Below, piece after piece: positions 3,098 to 31,572 of a stretch of DNA of 64,000 bases (within the stretch, counting starts at the first letter, position 1; every line of letters starts with the position of its first letter). The notes beneath the pieces were generated by a model. The model worked only from the letters and a program-made list of their open reading frames with translations. It searched no databases and was not told the origin of the DNA. Source of the stretch: Podarcis tiliguerta (lineage: Eukaryota); NCBI GenBank assembly GCA_965153285.1, contig OZ229115.1; one strand, given 5' to 3'. Position numbers and translations under genes: made by a program.

Positions 3098-4522
3098 AGC
3101 AAAGCCAAAGAGCTGCCTCTATCTGCTGTCCGTTTTATGGAAGAGTTGGGTGAATGTGCCTTTGGCAAAATCTACAAGGGACACCTTTATCTACCAGGCA
3201 TGGACCATGCTCAGCTGGTTGCAATTAAGACCCTAAAGGACTGCAACAATCCACAACAGTGGGCAGAGTTCCAGCAGGAAGCCTCTCTGATGGCAGAACT
3301 GCATCATCCCAACATCGTTTGCCTTCTTGGCGTTGTGACTCAGGAGCAGCCAGTCTGCATGCTTTTTGAGTACATGAATCAAGGGGACCTGCATGAATTT
3401 CTTATAATGCGATCACCACATTCAGATGTTGGGTGCAGCAGTGATGAGGATGGTACTGTAAAATCTAGCTTAGATCATGGAGATTTTCTGCATGTAGCAG
3501 TTCAGATTGCAGCAGGGATGGAATACTTATCAAGTCATTTTTTTGTTCACAAGGATCTAGCTGCTCGAAATATTTTAATTGGAGAACAACTTCATGTGAA
3601 GATTTCTGATTTGGGACTGTCAAGAGAAATCTACTCTGCAGATTATTTCAGAGTTCAAAACAAGTCCCTCTTACCCATTCGTTGGATGCCCCCAGAGGCA
3701 ATTCTGTATGGCAAATTCTCTTCCGATTCAGACATCTGGTCCTTTGGTGTTGTCCTGTGGGAGATTTTCAGCTTTGGTCTCCAGCCCTATTATGGATTTA
3801 GTAACCAAGAGGTCATAGAAATGGTTAGGAAGCGACAACTTTTGCCATGCTCTGAAGACTGCCCTCCCAGAATGTACAGCTTAATGACCGAATGTTGGCA
3901 TGAGCTGCCATCTCGGAGACCAAGGTTTAAAGATATCCATGCCAGGCTGCGTTCTTGGGAGGGGCTGTCAAGTCACACTAGTTCTACTACTCCTTCTGGT
4001 GGAAATGCTACCACTCAGACAACTTCTCTCAGTGCAAGCCCAGTTAGCAACCTGAGTAACCCTAGGTACCCTAACTACATGTTTCCAGCACAGGGTATAC
4101 CACAAGGCCAAATTGCTGGATTTATTGGCCCACCAATACCTCAAAACCAGCGATTTATTCCTTTAAATGGATATCCAATTCCTCCTGGATATGCTGCTTT
4201 CCCAGCTGCTCACTACCAGCCTGCAGGCCCACCCAGAGTAATTCAGCACTGTCCTCCACCAAAGAGTCGTTCGCCAAGTAGTGCAAGTGGATCAACCAGT
4301 ACCGGCCACGTGACTAGCTTACCCTCTTCAGGATCTAATCAGGATGCAAATATTCCTTTGCTGTCTCATATGTCTATGCAGAGTCATCCAAGTGGGATTA
4401 GTATAACCGTTTTTGGAAACAAAACTCAAAAACCCTACAAAATTGACTCCAAACAGACATCTCTATTAGGAGATTCCAGTATTCATGGACATAATGAGAC
4501 CGTGATTTCAGCAGAGATGTAA
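3098..4522 (+). CDS. ROR1: ROR1 last coding exon: tyrosine pseudokinase domain plus Ser/Thr-rich and Pro-rich tail
   Basis: Acceptor ctttctaacag|AGC gives [13 protein letters not shown] in frame with ORF 3137-4522. Motifs [18 protein letters not shown] and DLG are the ROR1 pseudokinase signature. Ends ISAEM-stop. Confidence 0.98.
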
Positions 4523-12680: not shown

Positions 12681-13867
12681 GTGAGTACAGCTGGATTCCC
12701 AGCCCCCACCCCCTACAACTTTGTTTACAGTGGTCAAGATCAAGACTGAAGTATAACACTGTATCCATCATCATTATAACCCTCCTCATCATTAATAAAG
12801 GATGTAATGTCTCCTCTCTACTGTTCCATAAATCAAGATGATGATGATGATGATGATTATTATTTTAATGTTACACATGGTAAGTGATGTTGAAGAGCCT
12901 AACTGGATGAAGTGGGCTAGAAATATTCTAAATAAAAAACAGAGGTGGGGCAGTTTATTATGATTCTTTTTTAAAATGAATTGTGCATTGATTTTGTAAC
13001 CAAATGATGAAAAATGCTTCTGACTCGGATCCTAACTGATCCTCTGCGTATAGAGGATTCTTCCATTTGTAGAGGTGAGAAGGATCTAGTAGACATTCCC
13101 ACTGATAACATCTTTTTGCCAATTTCTCCTTCCTATACTGCCACATATGGTGGTTCAAAGAGTCCTCCAATTCCCTAGAACAGTTTTTTGAGGGGCAAAG
13201 GGGCTCCAGGGAGAAGAAATGAGGTCAATTAAAGTCACCTCCTCATTTCTGCTGGCTCACAGGATGCTCCTACCTGCAGAACTTGAGCTTCTGACCCATC
13301 TCCCCCTTTGCTCTGAAAAAGACCTAACTTTCTTCCTCATACTTCTTGAAATGCTGGGAATTAGTTTACTACCATCTCAAAGCTTCTCTGCTAAAGTGCT
13401 TAGGATGGTGCATAATAGACCAGCCCTTCCTTCCCCATTTCCTAAGAATAAGGTTGCCATCTTAAAAAACTTCACGACAGGCAGAAACCTTACCGGTACA
13501 GCCTTTTGCAGCACAGCAGTGGGATGGTGAGGAATGTTTTGCCTGTTGATCCTCTGCACTGTGGTCACTCAGCAGTTAAAAACACAGGAGAGCTAACCTG
13601 TGCCAACCCCAAGTGAAAAAGCCATAGAGTGACCCTTCTGCCATGTAGAGGTTTTCCAGCAATGCCAGAGCAGTAGCAGCCACCTAGCCTTCCTTTGTGT
13701 GGGGACAACTTACAATACAGGGACAACTAACCTTTCTCAGCTTAAGGGCTGCATTTCCAGGGGGTTCATGTCAGTGGTAAGAGGAGACAGAGGCAAAAGT
13801 GTACAGAATACACCTCTCCCTCCTTCCCTCCACCTCTCTCCTCCAGGCAAGCAAGAGGCATTATTAC

Positions 13868-15906: not shown

Positions 15907-17478
15907 GTAGCCATACTGTTTCCTATAAATGTTGTGTTGCACTGTGATATTGCACTGCCAAAACAATTACGAATGCAATGTTTTTAATGTGCCGTTACTA
16001 CTGCTTGCCAAATATATAACCCTTTACATATAAATGCTTTGCAGTCTCTATTGTGTTCTCTCTTCAATTACCTTGCAATATATTGAGGGATTATATTATA
16101 TTGCCCAGTCAGTCTGGAAGTGGAACTTGAATCAATGTCTTCCAGATCTCAGTCCAATACCTTAACAGAAGCATTTCAAGAATAATTTTACTCCTTTCAC
16201 TCTTTACAATCCAATAAAATATCTATTCCTGTTGTAAACATTTGTCTGGTTTTAACACCAATGAACAATTCACACTGGGTTGTGAATACAGTGTATTCTC
16301 AACACAGATTTGAAGCATATATGAGTGTCATTAAGTGTGTGGACAGTCCTTAACTACATGAACAGTGCCAGTGGATTCACTACAGTTAGGTAACATAGGA
16401 ATATAGGAAGCTGCCTTAGATTCAGTTGGACCATTGGTCCCATGTAGCTCAGTATTATCTGCATTGACTGCTAGTAGCTCTCCAGGTTTCAGACAAGGGA
16501 CACTCCCAGCACTACCCAGAGTCTTTCCCATTACGTGGAATGAAGCCCACACGCTCGGTGCAAGTATATATGTGAAAATAACTGCTCCTGTGCTTTCATA
16601 TATTGCATCGTGAGTTCAGTCTTAATTTTTCTAAAACTTTGAAATAATAGGTCACCTCCCTGAAATGTTTTGTGATGTAGAAAAAGATTGAAAGAAGAAG
16701 AAAAAAGATTTCAGTGACCTTTTGAAATGACTACACATGTATTGATAGCATTGCAAATTTTCAAAAGCAGATGTTTTGCAACTATGAAATATCACAGCAT
16801 AGGCATTAATATGTCTATATCTTTATGTAACAAGTGGAATAGCATATAAACTTTAAACACAATGAATTCGAGCTCATTGCTCTATTATTTGCTAATTCAG
16901 AGGTGGCTATCCATACAGCTACCATCCCCAACCTGATGCGGTCTAGTTGTTTGGGTCTGCAGCTGCTATAGTCTTTCACCATTGGCCATGCTGGTTGTGG
17001 CAGAAGAGAGTAGTACATCTGATAGGCACCAGGTTAGAGAAGGCTATCTTAGAGGTATAAATGTGACACTGTATGCATCTCTCTAAATCCCCTGATGCAC
17101 CTTAGGCTCCTTCTGCCCGTTCTCTTTCTGTTCCTGTCATCTGCTTTCCTCTCACACATTTGAAGTCCTCTTCACCACAGCAGGAGAGGGAAGGAGTGGG
17201 CAACAAGACCAGGAAGAGAGTGGGTGGGAGGAGCTGCAGCTGCCTTATCTCCCATTGCTGCATTAGATTAAAAGGTTTGCATCCGGTGTCTGCATTGCAA
17301 AGTAGCAGCCCTAGCTATAAATATTTCTAAAAGTATGTCAATATAAAGCCACAGTCTGTGCAAGCTTACATGCAAGTTAGGCATATTGATGACAGCAGGA
17401 CTTATTTCCAAGTAAATGCATGCAATTTGGGGCTACACGTGCACTTAGATGTTCTGATTTATTTCTTTTTTGTACTAG

Positions 17479-17571
17479 GAGCTGAACTCCAACTATCATT
17501 AAGGTACACTGAAGAGTACAACAGAGTCCCTCCAAGCATCACTTTCAACACTATTCCGTTCCATCCCAATG
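17479..17571 (+). CDS. UBE2U: UBE2U coding exon 3 (AELQLSLRYTEEYNRVPPSITFNTIPFHPN)
   Basis: tttgtactag|GA ... AATG|gtaagg. 93 nt. Contains the E2 HPN motif. Confidence 0.94.
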
Positions 17572-18483: not shown

Positions 18484-19324
18484 TACTACAATTCTGCCCT
18501 TTCCTCCAAATCAGACCTGGCCACTATAATTCATGTACTTATAGACTTGACTGCTGCTTCTGTAGTGCACTCTAAATTGTGCTGCTCTTTAAAGACATCT
18601 AGAAATTTCAATTAGTACAAAAAGACACTGCTAGGTCTGTGGTTGTTGCCTGTTTGTTGTCAAGTTCAACTGGAGGTAATGGGTCACATTTTTAAAGCAC
18701 TAAATGGCTTTGGGACCTTGATGCATTAAGTATAGCTTTCTTCCATATGGACTCTTTCATGTACTTTTCAAGTATCTGAGGTCCTGCTCCATTCCAATCC
18801 CAACAAGCTGAAGTTTGCTTACTATGTAGGAGAAGATCCTTTTTTAGCAGTAGAGCAGATTCCATAGAACTGGATCCCCAGGCCAGTATTACTGCCTCCC
18901 TTTAGACCCACAGGTCAGCATATGTCTTTTTAAGGAGGCCATAGGTGCAGTAACTCTGTTGTCTTTCTGCTTTCTGTATAGATTACTTCTGCTGATACAT
19001 TTGCAATCCCTTTCAATTTTTATTTTATTTTATCTCTGGTGTTGTGTACTTTTTTGCCTTTATTATGTTGTTTGTTCATTGCTATGACAGTTTTGTTAGT
19101 CGCTGTGAATTATTTGATAGAAAGCTAGATACAAATTTTAAATGAAAAATAACTCAGTTAGATCTTTAGATATCTGCATACCTTTCTTTTGTTGTCTAGC
19201 TGTAGGGAATAAAACTTATCATAGCCTGTCTAGCATAATTCTGATACAAAGTTTCAACTGTCTTATTGGCATATAAGCGTATGAACCTCCATTCTGAGCA
19301 TTAATGATTTGTCTTCCATGCAAG

Positions 19325-19422
19325 TGGACCCAAAGACTGGAAGACCTTGTCTGGATTTTCTAGATGATCCTACCAAGTGGGACAGCAAACTTACAATGAC
19401 TAGTATCCTACTTTGTATCCAG
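19325..19422 (+). CDS. UBE2U: UBE2U coding exon 4 with catalytic Cys (VDPKTGRPCLDFLDDPTKWDSKLTMTSILLCIQ)
   Basis: catgcaag|TG ... CAG|gtaaag. 98 nt. TGT at 19348-19350 is Cys89 of the joined protein, the same number as the recalled human active-site Cys. Confidence 0.93.
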
Positions 19423-21038: not shown

Positions 21039-21165
21039 GTTTTGCTGTCTATTCCAGTTTTGAAAAATCCAGTGAACTTGGAGGCAGCTCATTTGCTGAG
21101 GAACAATTATCCCCTGTATAGGAAAAAAGTTATACAGTGTGTCAAAACTAGCCAGCACCTAGAAG
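21039..21165 (+). CDS. UBE2U: UBE2U coding exon 5 (VLLSIPVLKNPVNLEAAHLLRNNYPLYRKKVIQCVKTSQHLE)
   Basis: tcctgtag|GTT ... GAAG|gtaata. 127 nt. NPVNLEAA is shared with human UBE2U. Confidence 0.93.
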
Positions 21166-24787: not shown

Positions 24788-24876
24788 ATATGTTACCTCC
24801 ATATCGTATGAAGAATATTACTGGACATGGTATAAATTGGCCACATCAAAAGCTGCAGAAGAGTTTAAAAGCCCAG
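24788..24876 (+). CDS. UBE2U: UBE2U coding exon 7 (YVTSISYEEYYWTWYKLATSKAAEEFKSP)
   Basis: ttttcag|A ... CAG|gtaagc. 89 nt. Aligns to recalled human SFSDYYQTWSRIATSKA. Confidence 0.9.
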
Positions 24877-25179
24877 GTAAGCTGATGCTTTTGGTTTAGC
24901 AAAAACTAAAGATAGCAAGCCTGATTCTGATCTTGTGCTAGATTTGAGTAAGTGCAAGGGCTCATTCTCATGACCTCCCAGTATGGCAGCTGAAGTTTTA
25001 AGTCAGGCCACACAAACTTTCAGGAGCAATGCCATACACTAAGGAAATTTTTGAATGAAAGCTGGCTCATGACTTTGTGAGATTTTGGCTAGTCTTATTA
25101 AAGGTATTATAACACTGTAGCTTCTGGAGCAGTTGCTTTTTTTTGTAATGGACAAACATAGCTACCTTCTTTTTAAGAT

Positions 25180-27535: not shown

Positions 27536-29786
27536 AGAAAGAAACTTCTGGTGTGTTTGAAGCAGGGGTTTTTCAGAATGCAAATTTGTCTCGCTTATAA
27601 TGCTCAGATGTATTATGAATTCAGCATTGTTTGCTTGAGAGGTCTTCTCTGGGTCAAAATATAAAAGGAGATTATGGATATGCATGAGCTGTAAGTTTTT
27701 AACTGCTCTTCAAAATTTCATTTCTATTTTCATCCCAGTCCTAGGTGCTAATTGTTCCAGGGAACTATGCAGTTCTTAAGTTACAGCACATCTCGAGGCA
27801 GCTCCTGAGCCTTGGGAGCAAGGGAGCTCAGCAATCCTTGAACTTGTTTGTCCAAATGAGCAAAACCTTGACAGGGTCTCCTTATAATTTCTTCCCGTAA
27901 ACCCTTTCATTAGTCCATGTCACCCTAGTTAGACTCTTAGGGTAGGGGTTCCTTCGTGTCAAGTGGCTGCTGAAAACTCATTGAAAATATAGGCACCTTT
28001 TGACAATAGTAAAAGCAAAAAGGAAACTGAAATGACATGTTTGACTCAGAATTAGTTTTGGGGACAATTCTCTTTATTATTTTATCCAATGTGTGTGGTT
28101 GCTGCCTCCTAAGTAGATTTAAAATCTTCTCTTCTTCTTTGTGTCTGTTTGGGATTGGGAGAAGAGGCTTGAATTTCCAATATGCCTCTGATACCAGGTA
28201 CTGGGGATATAATGCTCATGTCCTGTTTGTGGTCTCCGTGCATCTGGTTGGCCACCGTGAGAACAGAATGCTGAATTACTTAGGGCTTTGGTCTGATCGG
28301 GCCCTTCTTATGTTCTTAATTATTTGTGGAAGACTATCAAGTTGCAGGAGGCCCATACCTGTCCAAATAATCTTGCCTTTATTTGTTTTTGTGACTCAGT
28401 TCAGTGTTCCTTTAGTCCACTGGCTCTATAGAAAATGGCTTTTGGTGGCACAGAGGACTAAATGGACAGTATTGTTTTGCTGCCTTCAAACAACTGAGTA
28501 TCTGAGAAATAAATTGTCAATAACTCTACCTGTCACCCAGCCTGGCCCTCCTTTGTTACACATAACAGTTACTGCTTCGTTTCTGTCTCTAATCACTGAT
28601 CTTAGTGCCTCTGTATCTCCACAAGGAGCATCATCAGGGTCAGGATGCAGCACTCAACCAAGTAAATTTGCAATATTTCACATTTTGCCTCATTAAGGAG
28701 AGGAGGAGTGGACAAGGAAGTTGACAGCTAGTGGATTCCTCTGATTTTCCCAGTACTGCAACCAGCCCTCCTTTAGCTGCTACTTATTTTTCCCTGTCAT
28801 TTTCAATACTTGCGTATGACAGAATATGCAGAATGGGCTGGTCCTGGGGCTGTGTGGGGAGTGCGTCCTCATCCTTATAAAGGCCAATCATTCCATTTTA
28901 TTTGGAACTTGCTCTGGGGACAGAGAAGCATGTGCACTCCTGTCCCTCTGACCCCAGAGCAAATAATCAGTCAGTCTGATTATAATGTCTAAAGGTTATA
29001 GAATAGATTATACCCATATGGAAGAATCTATTTTATCTGACTTGCACTATGTATTTAATGTGTGTTTTTAAACATGCTGAAGAAGATTGCAACTAATTAT
29101 TTCATATATATGTTTATATATACAGGGCAGGGAAAGGCACTTCACCAGATAGTTTTGCCCACAAACTCGCAGAAACTCTATGAATATCTAATTTGAAGTT
29201 CAAATTGAAGGAAAGCAAACTATGGGACTAAATGAGTTTATTTTTCTTTCTGAAGAAACTCGAGGAATATAGGGTTAATTTTTCTTTGACACAACTTCCT
29301 TGTTTTATTTCCCTTAACAGAAGTTCTTTGTGTTATGCATTTGATAATTGCTTCATTATGTAGCACCACAGCATCCTACGTGACCCAAGAAAACATTCCA
29401 AAAAACTGAGAACGTCCTTTTTGACCCATCTGTCCATTTTTTACTTTTAAAAAAATGCAGCATGAACAGGCTGGAGCTGTTTGAGAAAGCAGCATTTGCT
29501 GTGAATCAGAGCAGCTTTCTCATGTTAACTTCATAGGAACATGAAAGGAACTTGCTATGAACCCCCCACCCGTTTGAATTTGCCTGAGTGAAATGGCCAC
29601 CTCCCACTGCCATCTGGCGGTAGCAGACAGACACTTTCCAAGCCGGTCTCCTTTTTATCTGTTGCTTCGTTTGGTTGGCAAAAAGCTGATTCCCCTAACT
29701 ATTGCATGTCCAGATGAGGACGGCAGCAATCCAGTTTTGCTTATAGTGAAAAAGTTGTCTGCGTGGCTGGCCCTGTTGTGTTACAG

Positions 29787-29978
29787 CAGGGGTGTCAAAC
29801 TCAAATTCATCGGGGGCCGCATCAGCAGTTTGGTCACCCTCAAAGGGCCGGTTGTATCGGCCTAAAATATTTGAGCAGGCTGAGACCCCCAAAGTTGATG
29901 GGCTTTGACATTTAAATGGGATGTGTGTGGCATGTGATAAATTATGTGAGGTTCGAGCTGGTCTTTGACCCGTAATAA

Positions 29979-30017
<39 letters not shown>

Positions 30018-31252
30018 TGAGGTGGGGCCTACCTGCCCCCCTCAATATTTTATTCAGCCTGACACCCCTGTTATGAAAGATTACTAAAGTCTGCCCCTGT
30101 GGTGATGTATCATAACATTGTGCAGGCCCAGTCTGAGGGCACCTTTACTGGACTGCGTCTTGTGGCTGGGGCTTATCTACGCCTTCTCTTCCTTCTCCGC
30201 CTGGTGCTGCCTCCTCCCTGTGCCAGGTGCTGGCGGGGGGGGGGGGGGGAGATGTGCCGGTTGCAACCCAGTTTCTGACGGGGGCCAATGCTGCTTGTTC
30301 TTCCCTCTACTTTTCAACACTGCAATATATCGCTACCGTATCACAACATCACTATCACAATGTTGAAAAGTTGGTATCGTCTGCTTTTAGGGGCTGATGG
30401 GCTTACTCAGTACGGACAGGGGCACTCCTAGGAATTTATTGGATTTCAAATCCCTGGATTTCAAATCCCATTGAGGGGGGGCAGGGGCGGACTTTGGTAA
30501 TATGGCACCCACCCTGAGTGAGGACAAACTTTGGTGCCCCCCCCCCCATAGAATAAATAGGCATCGTTATCATTATTTTGTCCTCCCTTGGCTCGGGGCG
30601 GGTAAGGCGCCCGCACGGCCCCAAATCTGGTGCTGGTGGAGGAAGCACATTTCCACAACGGGCCGAGCTGCCCCTGTGGATCCTGCTGCCTGAGGCAGCC
30701 GCCTCCCTTGCCCTCCGTGGCAAGCCGAGGCTGAGGGGGACGTTCGCTTGCCCAGGCGCCGGGCTTCCGTCCACTTGCTCCGGTGCGCTCGCTGCAGCCC
30801 TGCTGCCAGCTGCCAGCAGCCGTCGGGGAAGGCGGCCGGGCTCCGGGGCTCGGTGGGGCCCGCCGGCAGAGGGCGGCGCTGCGCCTCGCCTGGGCGTGGA
30901 AGCCCTGCTGGCACGTTGTCTCCCACGCCGCGCGTTCGCGTCGCGCTCCCGCCTCCATCTCGGCTCGCTCCCTCCCGTTCTCCGCCTCCGCGCCTCGCCT
31001 GCCAGACTCGCATCCCTGCCCGGCGGCGGCACAGCGGAGGCCGAGCATGGCACCAGCAGCGGCTTCCGGGGCGCGCGGAGGAGCAGCCTCTCTGCTCACC
31101 TCCACCTTCGTGCTGAAAGGCGACGCGGCGCACAACCAGGCGATGGTGCACTGGATGGGCGAGAACAGCAGTGAGAATGGCGGCTACACGGGCCACATGA
31201 CAACGTCTGGCGGGCCGGATTCGGCCCGCGGGCCTTGTGTTTGACACCTGTG
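29787..31252. mobile_element. Non-autonomous hAT-type DNA transposon carrying captured cargo (Pack-TIR-like)
   Basis: Left TIR CAGGGGTGTCAAAC at 29787. Right end GTTTGACACCTGTG ending 31252. Perfect 8-bp TSD TGTTACAG at 29779-29786 and 31253-31260. GGGCCG subterminal motifs at both ends. No transposase ORF. Confidence 0.9.
31020..31172 (+). pseudogene. SORCS2: Captured fragment of SORCS2 exon 1 (end of propeptide, start of Vps10p domain)
   Basis: Reads [51 protein letters not shown]; recalled human SORCS2 is ...[34 protein letters not shown] and GENSS favour SORCS2 over SORCS1/3. No signal peptide and no downstream SORCS exons in the window. Confidence 0.85.
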
Positions 31253-31572
31253 TGTTACAGCATAAAGCCATACCTGAAGGCAGAGATTGGTGTCTGAATG
31301 GTGTAGCAAGGCATCTTAGAATGTTGTCTTTTGCAGGGAGGTGCCAATTGGGTTCAGCCTCAGGCAGGAAATGCCTTGAGGTGGCATTGGCTGCCTGAGG
31401 AGCACTTCAGCATGAGCAGAGATATGTCATAGGCATCTTGAGCTAAGTGCTTAAAAGCAATAATTCAGTACAGGCTTCTAAGTAAGCTCTGCTCAAGGAT
31501 GAAGCACTCAAGCATGTATTTTGAGTGTTTTGCTAGTATATTGACTATATTAAGTTTATACAATGTATTATG

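Follow-up and report, generated by a model that had tools for sequence, protein, structure and literature searches.

The DNA analysed here is a 64,000-nt stretch of Podarcis tiliguerta contig OZ229115.1 (assembly GCA_965153285.1), hereafter the window. It carries the 3' part of ROR1 at its start and then coding exons of UBE2U. About 4.9 kb past the final UBE2U exon that could be recognised, a 1466-bp element (29787-31252) follows in the orientation of UBE2U, bounded by terminal inverted repeats (TIRs) and a perfect 8-bp target-site duplication (TSD). In its right third, as read from the sequence, the element holds a DNA copy of the 5' end of SORCS2, a CpG-island region, with exon 1 shortened. 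The element as a whole is most likely a non-autonomous Pack-type DNA transposon of the hAT superfamily, which is the best-supported label for it and not a proven one. The features are collected in Table 1.

Table 1. Coordinates, strand and character of the features in the window (MITE, miniature inverted-repeat transposable element; o/e, observed/expected ratio)
Feature	Position	Strand	Remarks
UBE2U coding exons	17475-17570, 19324-19422, 21039-21164, ~24789-24880	+	canonical splice sites
Left TSD copy, TGTTACAG	29779-29786	.	8/8 match, directly outside the left end
Left TIR CAGGGGTGTCAAACTCAA (29787-29804), followed by a subterminal region with GGGCCG motifs (29814, 29845)	29787-29862	+	homology to family members
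MITE-like unit, 284 bp, ending in a third, right-end-type TIR	29787-30070	+
Mosaic filler between the MITE-like unit and the cargo	30071-30676	.	CpG o/e 0.36-0.54; no Pfam, Rfam or tRNA match
GC-rich cargo	30677-31178	+	SORCS2 homology verified for 30861-31172; left limit approximate
SORCS2 exon-1 coding remnant	31047-31172	+	ATG and 14 codons, then, after an in-frame join near 31086-31091, the 28 codons that close exon 1
GTGAG, possible intron-1 splice-donor remnant	31171-31175	+	overlaps the last Ser codon
Right subterminal region, GGCCCG/CGGGCC motifs at 31189, 31211, 31222 and 31229, and right TIR (31239-31252)	31179-31252	-
Right TSD copy, TGTTACAG	31253-31260	.	directly outside the right end

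The exact flanking direct repeat is 12 nt long (TGTGTTACAGCA, at 29777-29788 and 31251-31262), and placing the ends of the element at CA...TG leaves an 8-bp TSD out of it. The left end reads CAGGGGTGTCAAAC (29787-29800) and the right end GTTTGACACCTGTG (31239-31252; reverse complement CACAGGTGTCAAAC). The inverted ends CAGGGGTGTCAAAC and CACAGGTGTCAAAC are identical at 12 of 14 positions, or at 15 of 18 when 18 nt are compared, and the inverted similarity of the left and right arms extends over about 75 nt. Both ends have the form known for hAT elements, short TIRs (about 10-25 bp) starting with CAG/TAG. Sites matching the TIR 14-mer with at most two mismatches occur three times in 64 kb, against 0.53 expected, and all of them are inside the element, at both ends and at the internal position 30057-30070. 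The bases adjoining the ends are AG and TG, not TA. The Pfam search detected no transposase, or any other family above threshold, in the long open reading frames (ORFs) of the element, and the Rfam and tRNA scans of the element gave no match. The preliminary description of this DNA, made from the sequence alone, had reported a 1466-bp block with TIRs, a perfect 8-bp TSD and no transposase, and the end coordinates and the Pfam result bear this out.

The only CpG island of the window is the block 30677-31185 (GC 0.73, CpG o/e 0.88); CpG o/e is 0.27-0.30 in the flanks and 0.25 over the whole window. A 65-codon ORF opens in this block with the ATG at 31047. Its first 14 residues are identical at 12 of 14 positions to the annotated N-terminus of Podarcis lilfordi SorCS2, MAPAAAAGARGGAS, the shared part being MAPAAA.GARGGA. 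Residues 15-42 form a 28-residue peptide, encoded at 31089-31172 and 80 bp from the right end, that matches mouse SorCS2 (PDB 6ffy) with an expectation value (E) of 7e-10, and the peptide region is identical to Podarcis lilfordi SorCS2 (CAI5780462.1) at 27 of 30 residues. In the protein searches every match bearing a name was SorCS2. The earlier assignment of the peptide to SORCS2 exon 1 holds; the preliminary description had put it at the start of the Vps10p domain. The named matches read FVLKGDA...GENSS, and a second group, unnamed at the source, reads FALTGDS...GHNSS, a form that we take to be of the SorCS1/3 type.

The agreement of the N-terminal 14 residues with Podarcis lilfordi indicates that the true SORCS2 start codon was kept and is fused to the closing part of exon 1. 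Between its two SORCS2 segments the ORF lacks some 52 codons, which specify the signal peptide and propeptide, and this gap is in frame; SorCS2 with an intact signal peptide is present in Podarcis lilfordi and in Naja naja. The Naja naja SorCS2 model (KAG8133092.1), from a cobra and with an ORF that continues upstream across the 5' region, aligns to the element at 30861-31172 (tblastn, E 1.25e-24; BLASTP with composition adjustment, E 6e-26) and shows exactly this gap. Since its homology begins at 30861, SORCS2 is also the source of 186 bp or more ahead of the ATG. The preliminary description was therefore right about the exon-1 peptide and understated the cargo, which also takes in this upstream part and the start codon and lacks the codons of the gap. 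The ORF, having no signal peptide, is not expected to yield a functional protein product. The island has no visible CpG decay, though the coding block differs from lacertid SorCS2 at 3 of 30 amino acids, and the island is thus either young or still unmethylated; this leaves open that it may still behave as an unmethylated, promoter-like region at the element. No other SORCS2 exon was detected within the window by tblastn, and the genes present are ROR1 and UBE2U, in keeping with the proposal that SORCS2 does not belong to this locus.

SORCS2 homology stops at ...GENSS, where the spliced lizard, snake and turtle proteins go on from NSS into VILILTK. The end of homology at this point, with exon 2 not following, had been given correctly in the preliminary description. 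Unspliced ORFs from snakes and another sauropsid read NSS followed by VSA, which corresponds to a GTGAGC-like start of the intron. The element reads AGC A/GTGAG/AAT at the last SORCS2 codon, and the right arm of the transposon begins at about 31179. Intron-derived sequence is at most 8 nt (31171-31178), and the cargo ends no more than 8 nt from the exon 1/intron 1 border. Exon 2, an exon-exon junction and a poly-A tail (A-run) were looked for at the cargo and none was found. Lacking exon 2 and poly-A, the cargo is not a processed copy; a processed retrocopy was excluded on these grounds and because GENSS is followed by GTGAG and the transposon arm instead of VILILTK, in agreement with the earlier view. 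The same view had used GTGAG as a splice-donor remnant speaking for DNA-level capture. This part stands in a weakened form: the intron evidence is 5 nt long, shares bases with the last Ser codon and needs a 2-nt gap in the match, and it favours capture at the DNA level weakly.

The interior to the left of the cargo is a patchwork. The third TIR, which closes the MITE-like unit, reads CAGGGGTGTCAGGC on the minus strand, and no matching 8-bp repeat was seen after 30070 on reading the sequence. In the filler we detected a 20-nt inverted repeat (30080-30099 and 30482-30501, identical at 18 of 20 positions) with hAT-like CCCCTG/CAGGGG tips, which stand in the order right end, then left end. The exact 12-mer CTGCCCCTGTGG occurs twice, at 30091-30102 and 30668-30679, both junction-like places. 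The tipped repeat and the 12-mer copies may be pieces of a second hAT-like family. The filler also contains a G15 run (30235-30249), a C11 run (30537-30547) and a 15-bp tandem duplication (30440-30469). Such a patchwork fits serial template switching among transposon copies, or a composite in which the right end used was a second one, lying past a MITE upstream of SORCS2. A perfect (ATG)13 microsatellite is located at 29979-30017, inside the MITE-like unit, and a similar triplet repeat is found at 12828-12871, 17 kb upstream of the element. The blastn comparison of the element with the window gave a microsatellite match only, and no second copy.

Relatives of the ends were sought with a pattern made of the left end and the subterminal GGGGCCRCAT motif. 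The scan detected ten metagenome contigs with independent family members, and there were 0 matches in genome contigs and viral contigs. The metagenome relatives resemble the element only in the terminal ~40 nt of both ends. A complete member of 1470 bp (L005:4361-5830, MDSP01000491.1) has its own perfect 8-bp TSD, CTCTACAC (8/8). Its right arm resembles that of the lizard element, in which the stretch 31206-31246 is homologous to the right end of this member, and its interior is unrelated. TA stands beside the end in none of nine distinct left ends of the family (0/9). The target preference of hAT elements is nTnnnnAn; the octamers flanking the nine left ends have T at position 2 in 7/9 and A at position 7 in 7/9, and the TSD octamer of the lizard element agrees with the preference at position 7 (A) and departs from it at position 2 (G). 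Taken with the 8-bp TSDs, the lack of TA in the relatives favours hAT. In another member contig a decayed ORF (L006:1358-1792, minus strand) shows a weak match to a Spin-doc-type zinc finger (PF18658) with E 4.9e-4, which falls short of the Pfam cut-off; the ORF is located 300-700 bp from a family TIR, reads toward the end, and may be a remnant of the family transposase. Zinc fingers of the Spin-doc type occur in hAT-Charlie-derived proteins. A reverse-transcriptase ORF (L003:46-1434, plus strand; RVT_1, E 7e-24) shares its contig with a family end and probably belongs to an unrelated long interspersed nuclear element.

As in Pack-TIRs, host gene sequence (the SORCS2 5' region, 30861-31172) is located between a pair of TIRs with a TSD. 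Tan et al. 2021 (PMC8277862) counted 370 Pack-TIRs across 100 animal genomes, hAT elements accounting for 208, so that the remark in the preliminary description on sparse documentation in vertebrates is out of date. According to this survey (PMC8277862), single-copy animal Pack-TIRs mostly arose from repair in place within a resident transposon, with the TSD left intact, and transposition was invoked for the multicopy cases, four only (three from frog and one from alligator). The in-place class is biased to nearby parents, while distal parents and GC-rich cargo are typical of the transposed class (PMC8277862). On the basis of the GC-rich cargo and of the absence of a parent within about 30 kb, we prefer transposition to filling in place, and we give a probability of about 55% to the reading that the loaded unit, ends and SORCS2 cargo together, transposed to its present site.

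The proposed course of events is as follows. The SORCS2 fragment would have been copied at the DNA level into a transposon at another place. We lean slightly to copying by template switching while a broken element was being repaired or replicated; this would account for the patchwork filler and the 52-codon gap as well. The somewhat less favoured route is an end bypass or two-element composite, in which the right end used was a second one on the far side of a short MITE upstream of SORCS2. Transposase supplied in trans would then have excised the loaded unit and inserted it into TGTTACAG, the present target.

The preliminary description had concluded from the intact TSD that cargo and ends moved as one unit. 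This does not follow, as repair in place also leaves the TSD intact (PMC8277862). An empty MITE could have been inserted first, making the TSD, and a later internal break could have been repaired from ectopic templates, first other transposon copies and then the SORCS2 5' region, in which case the cargo never moved. Such filling is the usual origin of single-copy animal Pack-TIRs (Tan et al. 2021, PMC8277862), the several transposon-end fragments and the 52-codon gap resemble serial template switches, and neither the window nor the ORF-based protein searches yielded a second copy. We nevertheless regard it as rather unlikely here, because parents in that class tend to be nearby and about 30 kb on either side of the element are free of SORCS2 sequence, and because GC-rich cargo with a distal parent marks the transposed class (PMC8277862). 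Copying of the cargo from RNA, as a first-exon cDNA, would explain a breakpoint so near the exon 1/intron 1 border (8 nt at most), a striking place for random capture of DNA, but exon 2, poly-A and an exon-exon junction are all absent and GTGAG follows the last codon, so we hold an RNA template to be very improbable. The block is about 75% GC with its G15 and C11 runs, a type hard to assemble, and the 52-codon gap could be a collapse, so the possibility that the assembly, through a chimeric join or a collapse, put SORCS2 exon-1 sequence at this place was also considered. A chimeric join would not, however, fall exactly between matched TIRs with a perfect 8-bp (12-nt) repeat, and the window has zero N letters and no gaps; we find such an artefact barely credible.

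The nature of the ends was weighed against the literature as well. A search for the TIR string returned primer coincidences only. TcMar-N15_AC, an old non-autonomous family of Anolis carolinensis with a 524-bp consensus, has the TIR CASRKGTGTCAAACTCAA and was filed under Tc1/mariner with a TA TSD (Novick et al. 2011, PMC3014272). This TIR consensus fits the left end of our element at all 18 bases (18/18) and the right end at 17/18, and both are non-autonomous elements of lizards; the Podarcis element differs in its 8-bp TSD and in having no TA. Either two distinct families have ends that resemble each other, or the published superfamily is in error, and the assignment of TcMar-N15_AC may need revisiting. 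A reading of our ends with a TA TSD was rejected, as the 12-nt flanking repeat would then call for two chance matches of 5 nt. That the ends are not hAT, being Tc1/mariner as published for the Anolis family or of another superfamily with 8-bp TSDs, would agree with the TIR match and with the lack of a hAT transposase adjoining these ends in any locus examined. It appears improbable to us in view of AG and TG beside the ends, TA in 0/9 family members, perfect 8-bp duplications around two complete copies, flanking octamers that for the most part follow nTnnnnAn, and the weak zinc finger (E 4.9e-4) near one family end. The hAT label of the preliminary description is thus in keeping with the 8-bp TSD and is set against the publication of the same TIR as TcMar-N15_AC (PMC3014272).

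Several observations weigh against transposition of a loaded hAT unit. The ORF-based protein searches, run on both strands with a 65-residue ORF, a 153-residue sense ORF and a 232-residue antisense ORF spanning the junction of cargo and end as queries, revealed no second copy in a set of 5.8 billion proteins, although this is a weak negative. No transposase was linked to these ends in the ORFs of the element or by Pfam on the ORFs of L003, L006 and L010. A simple model does not account for the internal third end (30057-30070) or the second set of end-like motifs, and the Anolis family with the same 18-nt TIR was published as Tc1/mariner (PMC3014272).

The kind of event is already known as Pack-TIR or Pack-hAT, and the SORCS2-bearing lizard element is a new example of it. 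Animal Pack-TIRs such as Pack-hAT-N8_XT of Xenopus tropicalis, with the 5' untranslated region of CAPSL (PMC8277862), likewise enclose a host fragment in the TIRs of a hAT element that is non-autonomous and has an 8-bp TSD. The cargo described here is about 500 bp long, with a start codon and most of a CpG island, whereas the median in the survey is 224 bp (PMC8277862). The survey lists 0 cases in anoCar2, its only lizard genome (PMC8277862), and our literature search returned no paper linking Pack-type capture with squamates or reporting such capture for lizards. Pack-MULEs of rice and other plants (see PMC8277862) are similar in that TIR elements acquire GC-rich 5' gene fragments at the DNA level; they differ in belonging to the Mutator superfamily, with a TSD of 9-10 bp, long TIRs and thousands of copies, and in being plant elements. 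The bat Helitron with NUBPL (Thomas et al. 2014, PMC4224331) is again a vertebrate DNA transposon carrying a promoter-proximal region and first coding exon, with a bias to 5' ends. It is in contrast a rolling-circle element with no TIRs and no TSD that captures by read-through, and thousands of copies were shown for the Helitron only (PMC4224331).

Much is known from plants about cut-and-paste transposons that capture gene fragments, while for animals the evidence comes mainly from one survey, in which nearly all cases are single copies made in place. The SORCS2 element is a clean case in which a whole promoter-proximal CpG island is present together with a start codon and a possible splice donor. 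Loaded hAT elements of this kind bear on two questions, their transposition and amplification in amniotes and the seeding of new promoters or first exons. A bolder and, in our view, doubtful hypothesis is that the element is one product of a burst in the lizard lineage, in which a hAT family repeatedly took up and spread CpG-island promoters with first exons, the island here being still unmethylated and offering a new promoter and first exon, in the sense of UBE2U, through the retained ATG and the GTGAG donor. If true, such a burst would be the cut-and-paste counterpart of promoter shuffling by bat Helitrons. The single SORCS2-bearing copy is probably inert, an instructive example with no new principle.

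The preliminary description had placed the element in a UBE2U intron, and this is not supported as stated, since the last recognisable UBE2U exon ends well upstream of it. The UBE2U exons were read individually and one of them was searched; this exon (19324-19422) matches PDB 1yrv with E 1.3e-9. Motif scans recognised no UBE2U exon downstream of 31.3 kb. The last exon ends in a strong donor, CCAG/GTAAG, or alternatively continues for five codons to a stop in frame. This makes the 3' end of lizard UBE2U, as read here, ambiguous. An intronic position of the element within UBE2U is possible. At the start of the window the ROR1 kinase-domain exon (3215-3403, plus strand) matches PDB 6tu9 with E 4.8e-36, against 1.6e-18 for ROR2.

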